Positions 1-60,931 of a stretch of 64,000 nt of DNA are shown piece after piece. The DNA comes from Ruditapes philippinarum. Its lineage: Eukaryota. The position numbers were made by a program, and so were the translations under genes. The stretch is from assembly GCF_026571515.1 (NCBI RefSeq), contig NW_026860607.1, positions 1 to 64,000 of the forward strand. The letters are read 5' to 3'. A model generated the notes under the pieces. That model searched no databases and was not told the DNA's origin. It was given only the letters and a program-made list of their open reading frames with translations. How positions within the stretch are numbered: position 1 is the first letter of the stretch; the number at the start of each line of letters is the position of its first letter.

Positions 1-176
1 AAAAATTGGGAAAAGATTTTCCTTTCAAAGAGAAAAAAAATTAGGGCATACAATCGAATTTAAACCCAAAACATGATGAAGATGTTTAATTGTGTGATAA
101 GGAAGATGCCATGAAATCGTCATGTCCTGATTCGTTTATAGAAACCGGAACAAATCCAGACAAATCGTTGTTGTAG
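1..176 (+). pseudogene. 3' end of a third ADP-ribosylarginine hydrolase paralog (copy of 45778-47031), frameshifted; the rest lies left of the window
   Basis: 93-176 translates CDKEDAMKSSCPDSFIETGTNPDKSLL* and 50-67 translates TIEFKP. These match the C-terminal tail TIELKP...CDKDGATKSSFSESFIEAGANPD of the 45778 ARH. The two pieces are in different frames (pseudogene or homopolymer errors). Downstream flank ~165-1030 matches ~47535-49125. Confidence 0.8.
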
Positions 177-1244
177 GGGCTTAATCCATTCTTTGCACAC
201 AACTATTTACATACAAATTCGAGTGGATATCAACAAATATTCAGAATCGACATATAGAGTTTTTTTCTGTGACTAACAATATAAATACATGAATCTTTCT
301 AAAGAAAATTTTAAAAAACTTAATTCTTTACACTTCATAATATATTCATGGTGTAAAATATATTTCATATCATTAATCTTTTATATTTGATCTTTTAAGA
401 ATTTAATTTCAATAAATGTACATTATTAGGATCTTTCAATGACAATTAGATATATTTTACTAACAATTTAAACATTTCAATAACAACTTAGTTTTGCAAA
501 CTAAAGATTCTGTTAGTTGTTCTAATATTTCTCACAAATTGCAGTAGTAATTTTTCATTTAAAATTGCCGTATTAAAAAACCTATTGCAATAATGAAAGC
601 AACATTTTAACTATACTGAACACACTGTAAACTACATTCTTTCGACACTTTGCTGTAATGTCATATCCAATTGTCATAGCCATGTTGTACATTTAGACTT
701 TTATTATATTATATTTCAAATGTTCGGTTAAAACTAATATTATGTAAATTGAAAGTGTGATCTGTACTTCATTATGGCCTTTGTAAATCCAAGGTAATAT
801 TTTATTTTTCCGATTGCGGCCATTAATGTTACATAATTATACATTGTTAAACGAGACTCTATTATGTTTTTTTACATTATGTTTTTCGATATTTATATTC
901 CATTAATTTTTATGAAGGTCTAGACCAATAACTTGTTTCCAAAATCTTGCTCACTTCCTTTTTACAGAATAATTATTATTCTAATTGTTGAAAAAGACCT
1001 TAATTGAAAAACTTTGCAACGCTTTTCACTCAATCGGGCTTATGATAGCACAAAATTTCAATTTTTTACGTACAGCAGCTGATCTATGTAAAATTCAATT
1101 TTCCTGTTGTAGGCATTTCAAACTCAGTCGGGATCCTTAAAGAAATATCTATTGTTTCCCGGCTTATAAAATTATTGTTTAATGTAACAATAGGTTTATT
1201 TGTTATTTGATGAGAAAAAGATAAGACAAATATTTGTTGTGTTT

Positions 1245-2326
1245 TTAGCTCACCTGTCACAAAGTGACAGGGTGAGCTTTTGGGATCGCTTTTCGTCCGG
1301 CGTCCGTCCGTCGTCAGTCCGTCCGTAAACTTTTACTTTAAATGACATCTCCTCATAAACCACTAAGCCAATTTCATCCAAACTTCACAGGAATGTTCCT
1401 TTGATGATCACCTTTAAAAATTGTTCAAAGATTTTAATTCCATGCAGAACTCTGGTTGCCATGGCAACCGAAAGAAAAAACTTTAAATATCTTCTTTTAA
1501 AAAACTTTAAGAGCTAGAGCTTAGATATTTGGCATGGAACATTTTCTAGTGAGTGTCTACCAAGTTTGTTCAAATAAAAGCCCTGGGGTCAAAATTGGCC
1601 CGCCCCAGGGGGTCATTGATTTTCCCTATTGCATATAGTAAAAACTTAAAAAATCTTCTTTTAAAGAACTCAAAGAGCTGGAGCTAAGATATTAAGCATG
1701 AAACATGTTCTAATGGGTGTCTACAAAGTTTGTTCAAATAAAAGCCCTGGGGTCAAAATTGGCCCCGCCCCGGGGGTCATTGATTTTCCTTATATGTGTA
1801 TAGCAAAAACTTTAAAAATCTTCTTTGAAAAAACCCAAATAGCTAGAGTTTAGATATTAAGCATGGAGCATCTTCTAGTGAGTGTCAACAAAGTTTGTTC
1901 AAATAAAAGCCCTGGGGTCAAAATTGACCCCGCCCCGGGGGTCATTGATTTTCCTTATATGTGTATTGCAAAAACTTAAAACTCTTCTGTGAAAAAACCT
2001 GAATAGCTAGAGTTTAGATATTAAGCATGAAACATCTTCTAGTAAGTGTCTACAAAGTTTGTTTAAATAAAAGCCCTGGGGTCAAAACTGGCTCCGCCCC
2101 AGGGGTGTCATTTTTTAAACTATATGTGTATAGTAAAAACTTAAAAAATCTTCTTTGAAAAAAACCAATGAGCTAGAGCTTAGATGTTTAGCATGAAACA
2201 TCTTCTTATAGGTGTCTACCAAGTTTGTTCAAATATAAGCCCTTGTGTTACAATTGGCCCTGCCAGGGGGAAGGGGGAGGCCTATATACAGGTGAGCGAC
2301 CTCAGGGCCATCATGGCCCTCTTGTT
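1245..2326 (+). mobile_element. Non-autonomous Helentron-associated (HINE/pearl-like) element with an internal ~165-bp tandem array (~5 units)
   Basis: 5' TTAGCTCACC...GGTGAGCT hairpin, (CGTC)n microsatellite, repeated GTTTGTTCAAATAAAAGCCCTGGGGTCAAAA at ~1564/1728/1893/2057/2223, and 3' GGTGAGCGA...AGGGCCATCATGGCCCT palindrome followed by CTTGTT. Confidence 0.75.
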
Positions 2327-3114
2327 TCTAAATGTTTTGTGTAGTGTACACATTTTAATTGTGTGTAGTTTGCATACATTTGATATCGTACCTTTTTAAT
2401 GTAACCATGTAATTGTATTATTTGATGGAAATGTGAATGAATTTTGACACAAATGCTTTACATTAAAGGTAGTTGTATACGTTTAAATGCTTGTTAGTTT
2501 TTTGACATGTATAATTATAAGATAAGATAGCAAATATAATGTTTTCGTTATGACACGGCTCGTAAGAATTCCAAAAATGGGTTTTCAAGTAATGTAATAT
2601 ATATATTAAATATACATGTAAATAAAATAAATAAGACAATAGTCTTAACAATGACTGACACATTAATATGTTGCCAAAATCTAGCCATTGTCATCTGCAA
2701 TGACAGGAAAGGTATATTTAAAACAAACTATCATTTTTCATACGAGTTTAAATTTTATTGAACAATTCTTATTTTACTAGCAAAAATATATATATACCTG
2801 GTTTAATTTTTGGAAATTGTTCAACATAACGGCATTTGTAGTACATGCAGGTAGTTGTGCTTGCTTACTTTTTTCGAGTACGTTAAATCTACCACGGCTG
2901 TTTATTTAGTCAGGCTCAAGACCCTAGTTTATCCCGTTACTTTTAAAAGTCAAATTAAAGATGGCCGCCATTGTTTATTTATTCTTTCATGGGGTAGATG
3001 CAACACATTTTTTTTTTAGATTTTGATTAATTTCTAGTCGGCTAGACGAGAAGAGTACATGGTAAAATAATGCGGCATTCATCTTGTATTTCGAAATGGC
3101 TTACAATTTATTTT

Positions 3115-58328: not shown

Positions 58329-58700
58329 TATGTGGTTGATTTGTGCTATTTGTGTTTTTGTGTCCCCGCCAAGCAAAAATTCGAGAATTAACAAGTTAAA
58401 ATGGCGGGGCGCGGAGCGAAAACACGCTAATTAGCTGGGGCGCGGAACGAAGTTAAATAAATAAAACTTCGCCCCGCTAATTAGCGTGTTTTCGACCCGC
58501 GGCCCCGCCAAGCGAAAAGTCCCGCCGTTTTATAACTTTATTCTCGTTCCGCGCCCCCGCGGGGCGAAGTTAAATTTATTAAACTTCGCCCCACGCTCCC
58601 GCTAATTAGCGACTTTTCGCATCGCACCCCCGTCTTTTTAACTTTTTAACTTGGCAGGGTCGCGGGGCAAAAACACGAATGACACAAATTAGCCACCATG
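58329..58700. mobile_element. Foldback MITE with a GC-rich internal repeat (GCGGGGCG...CGCTAATTAGC)
   Basis: TGTGGTTGATTTGTGCTATTTGTGTTTTTG pairs with CAAAAACACGAATGACACAAATTAGCCACCA. Confidence 0.7.
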
Positions 58701-59592
58701 GTTTTGTTTAAGTTTTAAAACGATACAAAACCTTTTTTTATTTTTTTTATTTTAATACAATACACATGTATGAGTACAAAATATAGTATTTCGCAACTTT
58801 AAAACAAGCATGCAACACGTCCTATTGCTACATAATTAATTACCAAGTATAATCTTATGTTAGTGTTCATCCGTGCTGTTTTAGAGAAACTATAAACTTC
58901 GACGGGAGCATAAAATATAGTGAAGTATACAATGTCTAAAATGCAGTGATACAGTTCCTCAAATATATATATATATATAGTTAACCAAAACATAGTCGTG
59001 TGTACAATTAATTTTAAAAGCAATACAGGTATGAAACGTATCTGTGCCGCAGAACCCTTTTATGAAAAACAATGATGTAATTTTTTCGTCATTAAGAAGT
59101 AAAAAATTTTTTTTGTACTGTTTTTGTTTCTTTATTAAAACACAAGTCGTTTGTTTCATAGGAACATTGTTATTCATTTGCATAAGATATATGTCATTAT
59201 CAGTTAAGTCTTTGTTTATCATAAACAAACCAGTTTATTATACTTACTACAACTGGCATATATTAATACTGTTCACATATCTTAAATTTGCTATATACAA
59301 TATAGAAAAGGGAAATTCTATAGATTTCTAAAATGGCAAACAATAAAGGATTCAACAGAAATAGTTTGGCAAAAAAATAAAAAATTCAAACAACTCCATT
59401 CGTGAAATTAGTTTTAGGCTGTCACTTTCTCACTTCGTAAAAGTAAAGTTAAATATACCGTGTCTAAATGTTGTTGTCATCTACAAAAGATTTTTGCACC
59501 ACAGGTAATGCTAATGTCTCATCGACGGACACTCGTTAAGTACTGTGCTAATTTGCCCGTATACAGGTAAACAAGACTATAACTAACGCTAT

Positions 59593-60931
59593 TTAATGCG
59601 CCAGCAATGACAGCTTCACTCGATAATAACCTTCGCAAAACTCAGACGAGCTCATTACACAAAACTTTGCACCAGCAGGGTAAGTCCTTTCAGATTCACT
59701 ATACGAAGCGTACTTTTCTATATTTTTTGGCTGCCACGCACACTTCGCACTGTTGTCTATTACAAACAAAACAATATTTTCGCCTGGAGAATTTTCAACT
59801 GTCGGAAAACTTTGAGCGTTTACCTCATCTTTTGTTGAGGAAACTACAGATTGCCAGTAGAAAACCGTACCTCTTGTATACATGTTTACATCCTCCATTT
59901 TCATTTTCATCTGGCGGTACGTTGTTCCACTTTCAGGGGTTAGTTTGTCCCAAAAGAGCAATAGCATTTGGTACATGACAGTATACGGTCCAAGAGCCAG
60001 GTCATCTCCTGTTGGCTGGTAATTGGTACTTGTCTGTCTTCGCATAGCCATACTGATGTAATTGTAAAGGAAATTGGTTTCGATACTGTATGCCTTTACA
60101 ATCATCTTATAGAAATCTTCTTTAGTAGTGGTGTTTTCTATCATAATAGCATTTGCCTCGGATACAACAAACATAGAATCGCATACTTGTTTTTTCACCG
60201 CATCAAACCTTTGTTTGCTTCTATTCATATCCATCCAGATCGTATGTAAGATTTCCAGACCTGTTGCAAAAGGAGTAATTACGCCAGGATGAAATGTGGC
60301 TTTATATGAGGCAATGGTATTGCTTAGAAGTCCCAAATATAGTTCTCTCTGAAATGTGTATAGTTTTTGACCCATCATATTACATTTGTGTGCTGATAGT
60401 ATTCTATCCATGTCCGGGCGTTTGAATGCTCTTGCAATATCTAATGCACGCATTCCACTCGTGTCCCCGCATTCTGATGTGCACCTCTTTGTGCGCATAT
60501 CGGCATCACAAGCTTCATATTTTAGTAGTTTATTCAGGACATCTTTTTTATTCCAAAACGTCACTTGATGTATAACTCCCCAACGGCGTGAATCAGGAAT
60601 ACAGTTCAACAAATGAGCTTTTTTCGTCTTGTTCGGTTCGCCAATAATTTCCCATACCCGACCAAAGTTTCCATTTTTCGCCGAAAGAACCAAGTCATTA
60701 ATCAATTTTGACTCCTCTTCAATGCCATTGAAGGAACTGAAAAATACATATCTTTTTTCAGTCCTTTAAGAATATCATAATTTAAAAGAAATAATCATAT
60801 AAATAGATCTATAGTACTTAGCTATAGCGTTCATTATATTTAAGCTAAATAAAACCATTCTTTTAACTTTAAAAGATGACTTTGTTTTGTTTTGCTTGGT
60901 AAAATAGAACCTACCTGTTTGAAACTCCCAT
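59593..60931 (-). CDS. Second intact ankyrin-like + ARTC (R-S-ExE) mono-ADP-ribosyltransferase, ~386 aa; exon 1 60931-60915, exon 2 60736-59593; N-terminus MGVSNSS
   Basis: ATG GGA GTT TCA AAC AG|GTAGG joins TATTTTTCAG|T TCC TTC AAT in phase 2, at the same intron position as the 36741 paralog. Motifs: AYSIETNFLYNYISMAMRR, TYRQM, FYWQSVVSST and IEKYASYSESERTYPAGAKF. Confidence 0.85.

Follow-up and report, generated by a model that had tools for sequence, protein, structure and literature searches.

The eraser of arginine ADP-ribosylation in animals, ARH1, is arginine-specific and cytosolic; a review of this hydrolase names, among the open questions, the possible formation of arginine-ADP-ribose by an intracellular transferase (PMC7072381). 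The known animal writers, the ADP-ribosyltransferases (ARTs) ARTC1-5, are ecto-enzymes, which leaves writer and eraser mismatched in location. To our knowledge, the vertebrate ARTC and ADPRH genes are unlinked. Bacterial genes for the two activities can lie side by side. In the Tre1-Tri1 pair of the Serratia type VI secretion system, the Listeria ART-ARH pair of structure 8za7 and DraT-DraG, the gene for an ART of the R-S-E class adjoins one for a hydrolase of the DraG/ARH family; such partner hydrolases reverse arginine ADP-ribosylation, and the gene layout is described for DraT/DraG and Tre1/Tri1 (PMC8120803). Further, Zhang et al. reported ADP-ribosylglycohydrolase immunity proteins for Tox-ART-RSE toxins and noted such ARTs in molluscs (PMC3482391). 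Here we analyse 64,000 nucleotides of the clam Ruditapes philippinarum (positions 1-64000 of contig C9094, hereafter the window; the assembly has 1.41 Gb in 15,874 contigs), in which ART genes stand beside genes for ADP-ribosylhydrolases (ARHs), as in the bacterial pairs.

The clam locus shares features with both systems. Like the vertebrate ARTC (PF01129)/ARH1 cycle, it combines an ART fold bearing the R-S-ExE signature with an unambiguous ARH1 homologue, and remote homologues of the clam ART score above the PF01129 cut-off. Unlike the vertebrate ecto-ARTs, the clam ART itself does not match PF01129, carries ankyrin repeats and has no recognisable signal peptide or glycosylphosphatidylinositol (GPI) tail; the writer and eraser genes are also adjacent, often head-to-head, and amplified as pairs. 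The bacterial systems differ in other ways, because the clam ARH belongs to the metazoan ARH1 family rather than being DraG-like, the ART genes are spliced and encode ankyrin repeats, and no secretion system is involved. Since the clam eraser is an animal ARH1, the pairing appears to have been assembled within animals, independently of bacteria. Our literature search found no publication describing clam ART/ARH clusters; clam ARTs are mentioned in PMC8053099. We consider it fairly probable that the window captures a portion of a tandem array of heterodont-clam ART/ARH writer/eraser units, in which an ARH1 paralogue reverses the modification made by the neighbouring ART.

The window has 33% G+C and no N, and long open reading frames (ORFs) are rare in it, as expected for an animal genome. 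A search of the window with its four long ART and ARH ORFs (tblastn) recovered the gene order that had been proposed from the letters alone, namely ARH', ART pseudogene, ART, ARH, ARH, ART. The features of the system, assigned to lineages A and B (a third lineage, C, is found on other contigs), are as follows.

60 to 161, plus strand: ARH', the 3'-terminal part of a third ARH gene, of the B type; 34 amino acids with 56% identity to residues 380-413 (the C-terminal tail) of ARH_B.
14229 to 15769, minus strand: ART pseudogene of the B lineage (tblastn), disrupted by frameshifts, an inserted segment of about 0.5 kb and 7 in-frame stops.
36744 to 37902, minus strand: main coding exon (exon 2) of ART_A, an open frame encoding ankyrin repeats and the R-S-ExE ART domain (tblastn extent 36744-37862).
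38467 to 38489, minus strand: first coding exon of ART_A, encoding M-A-S-A-V-P-G and a split codon, followed by a GT donor.
38490 to 38805, no strand: spacer of 316 bp from the start codon of ART_A to that of the divergent ARH_A; presumed bidirectional promoter and 5' untranslated regions.
38806 to 39936, plus strand: ARH_A, an intact single-exon ARH1-type hydrolase of 376 amino acids.
45778 to 47031, plus strand: ARH_B, an intact single-exon ARH1-type hydrolase of 417 amino acids with a lineage-specific C-terminal tail of about 45 amino acids.
59596 to 60736, minus strand: main coding exon (exon 2) of ART_B; its long ORF (59593-60705) is 100% identical to NCBI LOC132712763.
60915 to 60931, minus strand: first coding exon of ART_B, 17 nucleotides encoding MGVSN and a split Ser codon, with a GT donor.

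The sequence-only reading had counted three ARTs and three ARHs. All six loci are present. Base 1 of the window is the left end of contig C9094, so the ARH' gene is cut by the assembly and can be scored neither dead nor alive. Positions 27-790 align (79%) to a B-type ARH on contig C2914, covering its 3' end and flank, and the 3' flank of ARH' reaches about position 790. Over its C-terminal half the ART pseudogene shares 68-85% identity with ART_B, and the pseudogene groups with that gene at a Shimodaira-Hasegawa-like approximate likelihood ratio test (SH-aLRT) support of 100; its ExE segment reads SNSLSSNPAG versus SESERTYPAG in the intact gene. Given the stops, frameshifts and insertion elsewhere in this copy, the altered ExE loop does not stand out as a specific target of decay. 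The two intact ARTs are clearly diverged from each other (47-49% identity), as are the two intact ARHs (58%), which agrees with the initial description. So does the dearth of other recognisable host genes: the 14 further ORFs (77-301 amino acids) gave weak transposon-type matches or none, and multi-exon genes with short exons are possible.

To judge from their sequences, ARH_A and ARH_B are ARH1-type ADP-ribosylarginine hydrolases. They match PF03747 with E values of 7.8e-60 and 7.2e-62, respectively, over model positions 2-287 of 287, and retain the VSDDT and HGGDSDST motifs of the di-metal site. Searches against known structures matched them to human and mouse ARH1 (6iux, 3hfw and 6g28) at about 1e-128, versus about 1e-8 for ARH3, and the clam ARHs share about 55% identity with vertebrate ARH1. 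We considered whether an ART-ARH operon had been acquired horizontally from bacteria and rejected this for the ARH, which is a metazoan ARH1; this rejection does not extend to the ultimate source of the ART. At C1538:160894-179974, with no ART nearby, lie three ARH1 genes in tandem, all single-exon and belonging to the canonical heterodont clade, which indicates that ARH1 also duplicates on its own and that its coding sequence is intronless in this clam. Two ARH1-like proteins, P0035 from Mya (648 amino acids) and P0053 from Mercenaria (640 amino acids), are nearly twice the usual size and outscore closer single-domain matches. Fusion of neighbouring ARH genes during annotation is a probable cause, real double-ARH proteins being the alternative. 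A complex prediction of ART_B with ARH_B (residues 1-372) returned no answer (ipSAE 0.01, controls not run), which speaks neither for nor against binding.

The identity of the ART had to rest on fold, motifs and a transitive link to PF01129, because direct sequence searches were blank: no Pfam ART family was found for ART_A, ART_B or any of 24 family members even at E values up to 5, and a search of PDB sequences gave no match at E values up to 10. We identified 33 homologues, and all those with a species name are from heterodont bivalves (Mercenaria, Mactra, Dreissena and Mya); two of the Mya homologues carry the UniRef name 'Mono(ADP-ribosyl)transferase'. R280, S302, S305, S306 and E355 never vary in an alignment of 24 homologues, at least 90% of which also have E353. 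These residues lie in the motifs TYR-x-M, W-Q-S-x-V-S-S and E-x-E-R-T-Y-P-A-G, which together form an R-S-ExE signature (TYRKM, WQSIVSSS and EHERTYPAG in ART_A; TYRQM, WQSVVSST and ESERTYPAG in ART_B). The AlphaFold model of ART_B (AF2; pLDDT 89, pTM 0.90) places the catalytic residues on the expected strands, with the Arg on beta1, Ser-x-Ser on beta2 and Glu-x-Glu on the ARTT loop/beta5, and has the split beta-sheet core and N-terminal helical subdomain of the ART fold. Foldseek searches of the PDB with this model returned 109 matches at E values up to 1e-3, and the best 50 of these 109 were all R-S-E ARTs or homologous effectors (probability 1.00). Matches to the C-terminal 250 residues included Vis (4xzj, 1e-7), HopU1, XopAI, Certhrax, Tre1 (6dre and 6drh), the Listeria ART-ARH pair (8za7), ExoS/T, C3 and rat ART2.2 (1gxy).

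A profile of the ART domain alone retrieved 173 cluster representatives among 1.84 billion proteins. Five distant relatives (P0170, P0174, P0192, P0196 and P0211) scored 23-40 bits against PF01129, for which the cut-off is 22.3, and contain ankyrin repeats. The nearest ESM Atlas clusters are families of PF01129, the NAD:arginine ADP-ribosyltransferases; a cluster look-up for the distant relatives returned a name for 0 of 10 clusters. As the clam ART itself falls below the PF01129 threshold and the link is transitive, we filed it as a divergent relative and not as a member of that family. Modelled fold, invariant motifs and the transitive link nevertheless identify it as a real R-S-ExE mono-ADP-ribosyltransferase, a divergent ankyrin-ARTC enzyme. 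The ExE motif and the nature of the ARH partner suggest specificity for arginine. The N-terminal 125 residues gave weak ankyrin matches in 13 of the 24 members. In hydropathy profiles, the only approach used here, no signal peptide, transmembrane segment or GPI-type tail was seen; the N-termini are polar and the Kyte-Doolittle maximum (window of 19) stays below 1.5 throughout. The ankyrin repeats and lack of a signal peptide predict an intracellular enzyme.

One otherwise intact C-type ART (C15743:14393-15514, minus strand; P0007, LOC132735433) reads YMKHERTYPAG, with K-H-E in place of E-x-E; E-H-E is retained in its close paralogues. Among other R-S-E enzymes, transfer to arginine requires the first Glu and NAD hydrolysis does not. 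This copy may have a changed activity.

The long ORFs of ART_A and ART_B both lack an ATG at their start, and short first exons complete the gene models. Exon 1 of ART_B (60931-60915; ATG GGA GTT TCA AAC AG, then the gt donor) is spliced to position 60736 and yields the N-terminus MGVSNSSFNG of the NCBI model, which is also that of P0001. The ART_A model begins at 38489 (MASAVPG), with a donor after 38467 spliced to 37902 through the acceptor AG at 37904-37903, and its M..VPG pattern matches the N-termini of the homologues P0008 and P0009. Fourteen sequencing runs from 9 studies, guessed to be RNA, contain 28-69% of the words sampled from positions 36500-40200. Logan contigs of 1.3-2.3 kb encode full-length ARTs of 386 amino acids (P0002 and P0003) in which the exon-1 peptide is joined to exon 2, which implies spliced ART transcripts. 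The first exon of all B-type ARTs, including the Mercenaria orthologue, encodes MG[AV]S[ND]S; A- and C-type proteins start with MA..VPG. The B-type MGxxxS start fits the consensus for N-myristoylation, and the ART lineages may act in different compartments.

We searched the 1.4-Gb assembly with proteins and profiles and found ART sequences on six contigs only (C9094, C7553, C15743, C2914, C13433 and C14351), all of which also carry ARH1-like genes. Of the 15 ART loci counted in the retrieved sequence (8 open, 7 broken), none is more than about 13 kb from an ARH, and the profile search of the whole assembly found no ART away from an ARH. Maps of the contigs other than C9094 cover about 1.5 kb around each match. 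Fifteen ARH1-like loci were examined in detail, 7 of them broken; the PF03747 search adds only two small pieces elsewhere in the genome, and C1538 is the only contig with ARH1-like genes and no ART. The sequence-only reading had staked its claim of a linked cluster against an independent scattering of the two families, and such scattering was not seen. Within the pairs, ART_A and ARH_A are head-to-head with divergent start codons 316 bp apart, and the C-type pairs on C15743, C14351 and C2914 share this arrangement with start codons 0.4-0.65 kb apart. The interval 38490-38805 is presumed to be a shared bidirectional promoter. The B-type pair, ARH_B and ART_B, is convergent, its genes 12.5 kb apart with satellite and reverse-transcriptase debris in the interval.

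Phylogenetic trees of the two families have matching clades. The ART tree resolved R. philippinarum clades A, C and B at SH-aLRT supports of 99, 99 and 100, with named Mercenaria orthologues for A (P0008) and B (P0004). In the ARH tree, a cluster-linked clade (SH-aLRT 91) is separate from the canonical heterodont ARH1 clade (SH-aLRT 99), which comprises the C1538 copies and sequences from Mya, Dreissena and Mactra. The ART-linked clade includes ARHs of Mercenaria, Mactra and Dreissena that share contigs or chromosomes with ARTs, and contains clades A, C and B (SH-aLRT 99-100, 98 and 100), in each of which Mercenaria has an orthologue. All adjacent pairs agree in clade (A with A, B with B, C with C), and ART and ARH distance matrices correlate across 11 pairs at a Mantel r of 0.78, a value reached in 1 of 20000 permutations. 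Sequence identities arrange both families as ((A,C),B), with B on the longest stem (0.8 substitutions per site in the ART and 0.5 in the ARH), and synonymous divergence (dS) between the three lineages is saturated. The matching clades with Mercenaria orthologues indicate that the unit duplicated as a unit, before the split of Ruditapes and Mercenaria. Thus, the linkage has outlasted an old duplication, as first proposed, and the two families are co-phylogenetic. Block duplication alone yields co-phylogeny, so this pattern does not demonstrate cognate biochemical specificity.

Other heterodonts provided further cases of shared location. In Mactra, ART ACF0H5_022459 and ARH ACF0H5_022463 are on one chromosome, and ART 008897 and ARH 008895 on another. 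For Mercenaria, a contig of 66,051 bp is given for ART P0008 as well as for ARHs P0036, P0046 and P0053, and ENA lists ART P0010 and ARH P0040 on a contig of 5,277 bp. Dreissena has an ART and two ARHs on the same chromosome. The locus-tag numbers and identical contig sizes suggest that ART and ARH are also adjacent in Mactra and Mercenaria.

Superimposed on this old linkage is a turnover of copies, which bears out the earlier proposal of birth-and-death evolution (7 of 15 ART loci and 7 of 15 ARH loci broken). A block at C7553:141340-166011 is colinear with window positions 35595-61368 at 88-96% nucleotide identity, intergenic DNA included, and represents either a haplotype that has diverged strongly or a segmental duplication of recent date (dS of 0.11 between ART_A and its counterpart, ART_A'). 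In this block, ART_A' has both exons open and keeps its ATG and donor, with one G-to-E change; ARH_A' contains two stops and is split by about 0.95 kb of inserted DNA, six stops interrupt ARH_B' and three frameshifts ART_B', so three of the four genes are dead. Further along C7553, a fragment of a C-type ART and its ARH are broken, and a B-type ART (ART180, 180014-181123) is open. In this assembly, 6 stops and one frameshift disrupt the B-type ART at C15743:38280-39349 (plus strand), the nearest relative of the intact, 386-amino-acid P0002, which was assembled from other public runs and has 5 member sequences. Inactivation of the C15743 copy may be polymorphic among clams. The ratio of nonsynonymous to synonymous substitution rates (dN/dS) among recent intact copies is 0.13-0.33 for ARTs and 0.18-0.48 for ARHs at the whole-gene level. 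Recent intact copies of both families are under purifying selection, rather than the gene-wide positive selection expected of an arms race; the dN/dS comparison had been called for by the sequence-only reading.

Taken as a writer/eraser unit, the locus could work as follows. The writer would be a protein of about 390 amino acids with N-terminal ankyrin repeats and a C-terminal R-S-ExE ART domain, from a divergent, signal-peptide-less branch of the arginine-specific ARTC superfamily, and the eraser would be a paralogue of ARH1, the cytosolic ADP-ribosylarginine hydrolase, dedicated to this unit. The ankyrin repeats would select one or more cytosolic targets, and B-type enzymes may act at membranes. 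The ART domain would put ADP-ribose on arginine and the adjacent ARH1 paralogue would remove it. Co-expression of A and C types from a shared divergent promoter could keep the modification transient or guard the cell against leaky activity. Regulation of such a unit would resemble DraT/DraG or the enzymatic half of Tre1/Tri1 immunity. The unit would have arisen before the clam families diverged and split into at least three lineages (A, B and C), with block duplication and pseudogenisation thereafter. We infer co-regulation within a pair, and ART and ARH may be matched pair by pair; a role in stress or innate-immune signalling is our guess. Cognate specificity and an immune or genetic-conflict locus are plausible, and the strict toxin-antidote form loses weight, given purifying selection and the open ARTs that lie next to dead ARHs. 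A bolder version is possible, though we rate it as rather doubtful: cytosolic ARTC-type arginine transferases and dedicated ARH1 paralogues would form matched, co-regulated modules (A-A, B-B and C-C) that co-evolved for hundreds of millions of years, act on ankyrin-chosen targets and serve as an expandable intracellular defence or cell-death switch, an independently built animal analogue of bacterial ART/ARH toxin-immunity.

Several observations weigh against a simple writer/eraser cluster. The convergent arrangement and 12.5-kb distance of the B-type pair mean that a shared promoter cannot account for all of the linkage, the Pfam searches with the ART were blank, and, to judge from the K-H-E copy, some of the ARTs may not be arginine transferases. 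A single locus may be represented by several contigs as alternative haplotypes (C7553 and the window, for example, given their 88-96% identity), in which case the true copy number per haploid genome may be below the counts given here. The 140-182 kb region of C7553 has two open ARTs (ART_A' and ART180) and three broken ARHs but no intact ARH, and on C2914 an open ART (ART44) is next to a broken ARH (ARH41); C13433 has the reverse arrangement. Common haplotypes with an active ART and no cluster ARH had been named beforehand as evidence against the proposed linked cluster, and one assembled block is an instance of this configuration. These open ARTs bear on a selfish toxin-antidote element or strict immunity pair, in which a lethal ART toxin and its co-inherited, cognate ARH antidote would drive tight linkage, deep divergence of haplotypes and variation in gene presence. 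Linkage that is tight at all loci fits such an element, as do the Tre1-Tri1 and Listeria toxin-immunity pairs among the best fold matches, and the 26-kb, four-gene block copy with three dead genes could be a hyperdivergent haplotype. The antagonistic two-gene units of Caenorhabditis (peel-1/zeel-1 and others) are likewise tightly linked, with pseudogenised copies and, as here, a deeply diverged second copy of the block. Pairs also tend to be intact together (4 of 12 scorable pairs) or broken together (5) rather than mixed (3), but the split is not significant and many of the pairs are not independent. Unlike the Caenorhabditis elements, the clam pairs are conserved across families over deep time rather than young and patchy, and both partners evolve under ordinary purifying selection. 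As open ARTs survive beside dead ARHs, strict dependence on an antidote in cis is unlikely; protection in trans by other ARH copies is possible. Overall, we regard the toxin-antidote element as unlikely.

Linkage could also have arisen with no functional coupling, if an ancestral ART happened to lie beside an ARH1 duplicate, the block was then copied and the enzymes act on unrelated substrates. Block duplication would by itself produce the co-phylogeny and the Mantel correlation, ARH1 duplicates without an ART on C1538, and the B-type genes are neither close nor divergent. Against such passive adjacency stand its survival in three lineages that predate the Ruditapes-Mercenaria split (and, as the locus tags suggest, in Mactra), the failure to find any ART apart from an ARH in 1.4 Gb and A- and C-type start codons only 0.3-0.65 kb apart. 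The ART-linked ARHs form a clade of their own, apart from canonical ARH1, and the chemistry matches: ExE-type R-S-E ARTs are the arginine-modifying class and ARH1 is the arginine-specific eraser (PMC7072381). We find uncoupled linkage improbable. A further candidate is a secreted or DNA-directed toxin used against predators or parasites or in cell killing, with the ARH as unrelated self-protection. CARP-1 of venerid clams and pierisin of butterflies are DNA ADP-ribosylating mono-ARTs of the R-S-E type, and ADP-ribosyl-guanine is not known to be an ARH1 substrate. The best fold matches of the clam ART are bacterial toxins, and Tox-ART-RSE is listed for 'metazoan (hexapoda, mollusca)' with ADP-ribosylglycohydrolase immunity proteins (PMC3482391). 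Against this candidate, the clam ART (about 390 amino acids) has no signal peptide or hydrophobic segment, its ankyrin repeats and B-type MGxxxS start are typical of cytosolic proteins, its partner is of the ARH1 type, whose known substrate is ADP-ribosyl-arginine (PMC7072381), and the Pfam family reached transitively is that of NAD:arginine ARTs. These differences, which set the clam enzyme apart from CARP-1/pierisin by description and not by sequence comparison, make the CARP-1-like toxin very improbable.

If the writer/eraser reading holds, the clam ARTs are candidates for the intracellular arginine transferase that would match cytosolic ARH1, being ARTC-type R-S-ExE proteins with no signal peptide and a genomic coupling to ARH1 paralogues. 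A cytosolic arginine ART with a matched ARH1 would be an enzyme of a long-sought kind that mammals seem to lack. The locus would also be an animal example of the writer/eraser gene pairing known from the DraT/DraG and Tre1/Tri1 operons, and several diverged pairs in one animal make a cross-specificity matrix feasible. It further offers a clean case of two unrelated families in birth-and-death evolution as one unit. Were the pairing merely ancestral adjacency, the locus would be a lineage-specific gene cluster of moderate interest.

Two further ORFs of the window, both outside the ART/ARH system, resemble parts of mobile elements.

15778 to 16458, minus strand: Harbinger/PIF-like transposase fragment, an ORF of 226 amino acids (PF13613 HTH_Tnp_4, E value 5e-4, below the gathering score).
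56810 to 57715, minus strand: reverse-transcriptase fragment between ARH_B and ART_B (PF00078, E value 0.003, below the gathering score).

The transposase ORF also contains the beginning of a DDE motif. It lies immediately next to the dead ART, on the 5' side of that gene, and a transposon insertion may have contributed to the gene's death. Positions 49765-50419 are a tandem array of about 30 copies of a 22-bp unit, which gives rise to two spurious minus-strand ORFs (273 and 175 amino acids). A 43-bp satellite of about 15 copies occupies positions 20609-21266, and the same satellite is found at C7553:140499-140836, immediately to the left of the duplicated four-gene block. Compared to C7553, the window holds about 14 kb of extra DNA between this satellite and ART_A (21.3-35.6 kb), including a G+C-richer segment at 28-32 kb.

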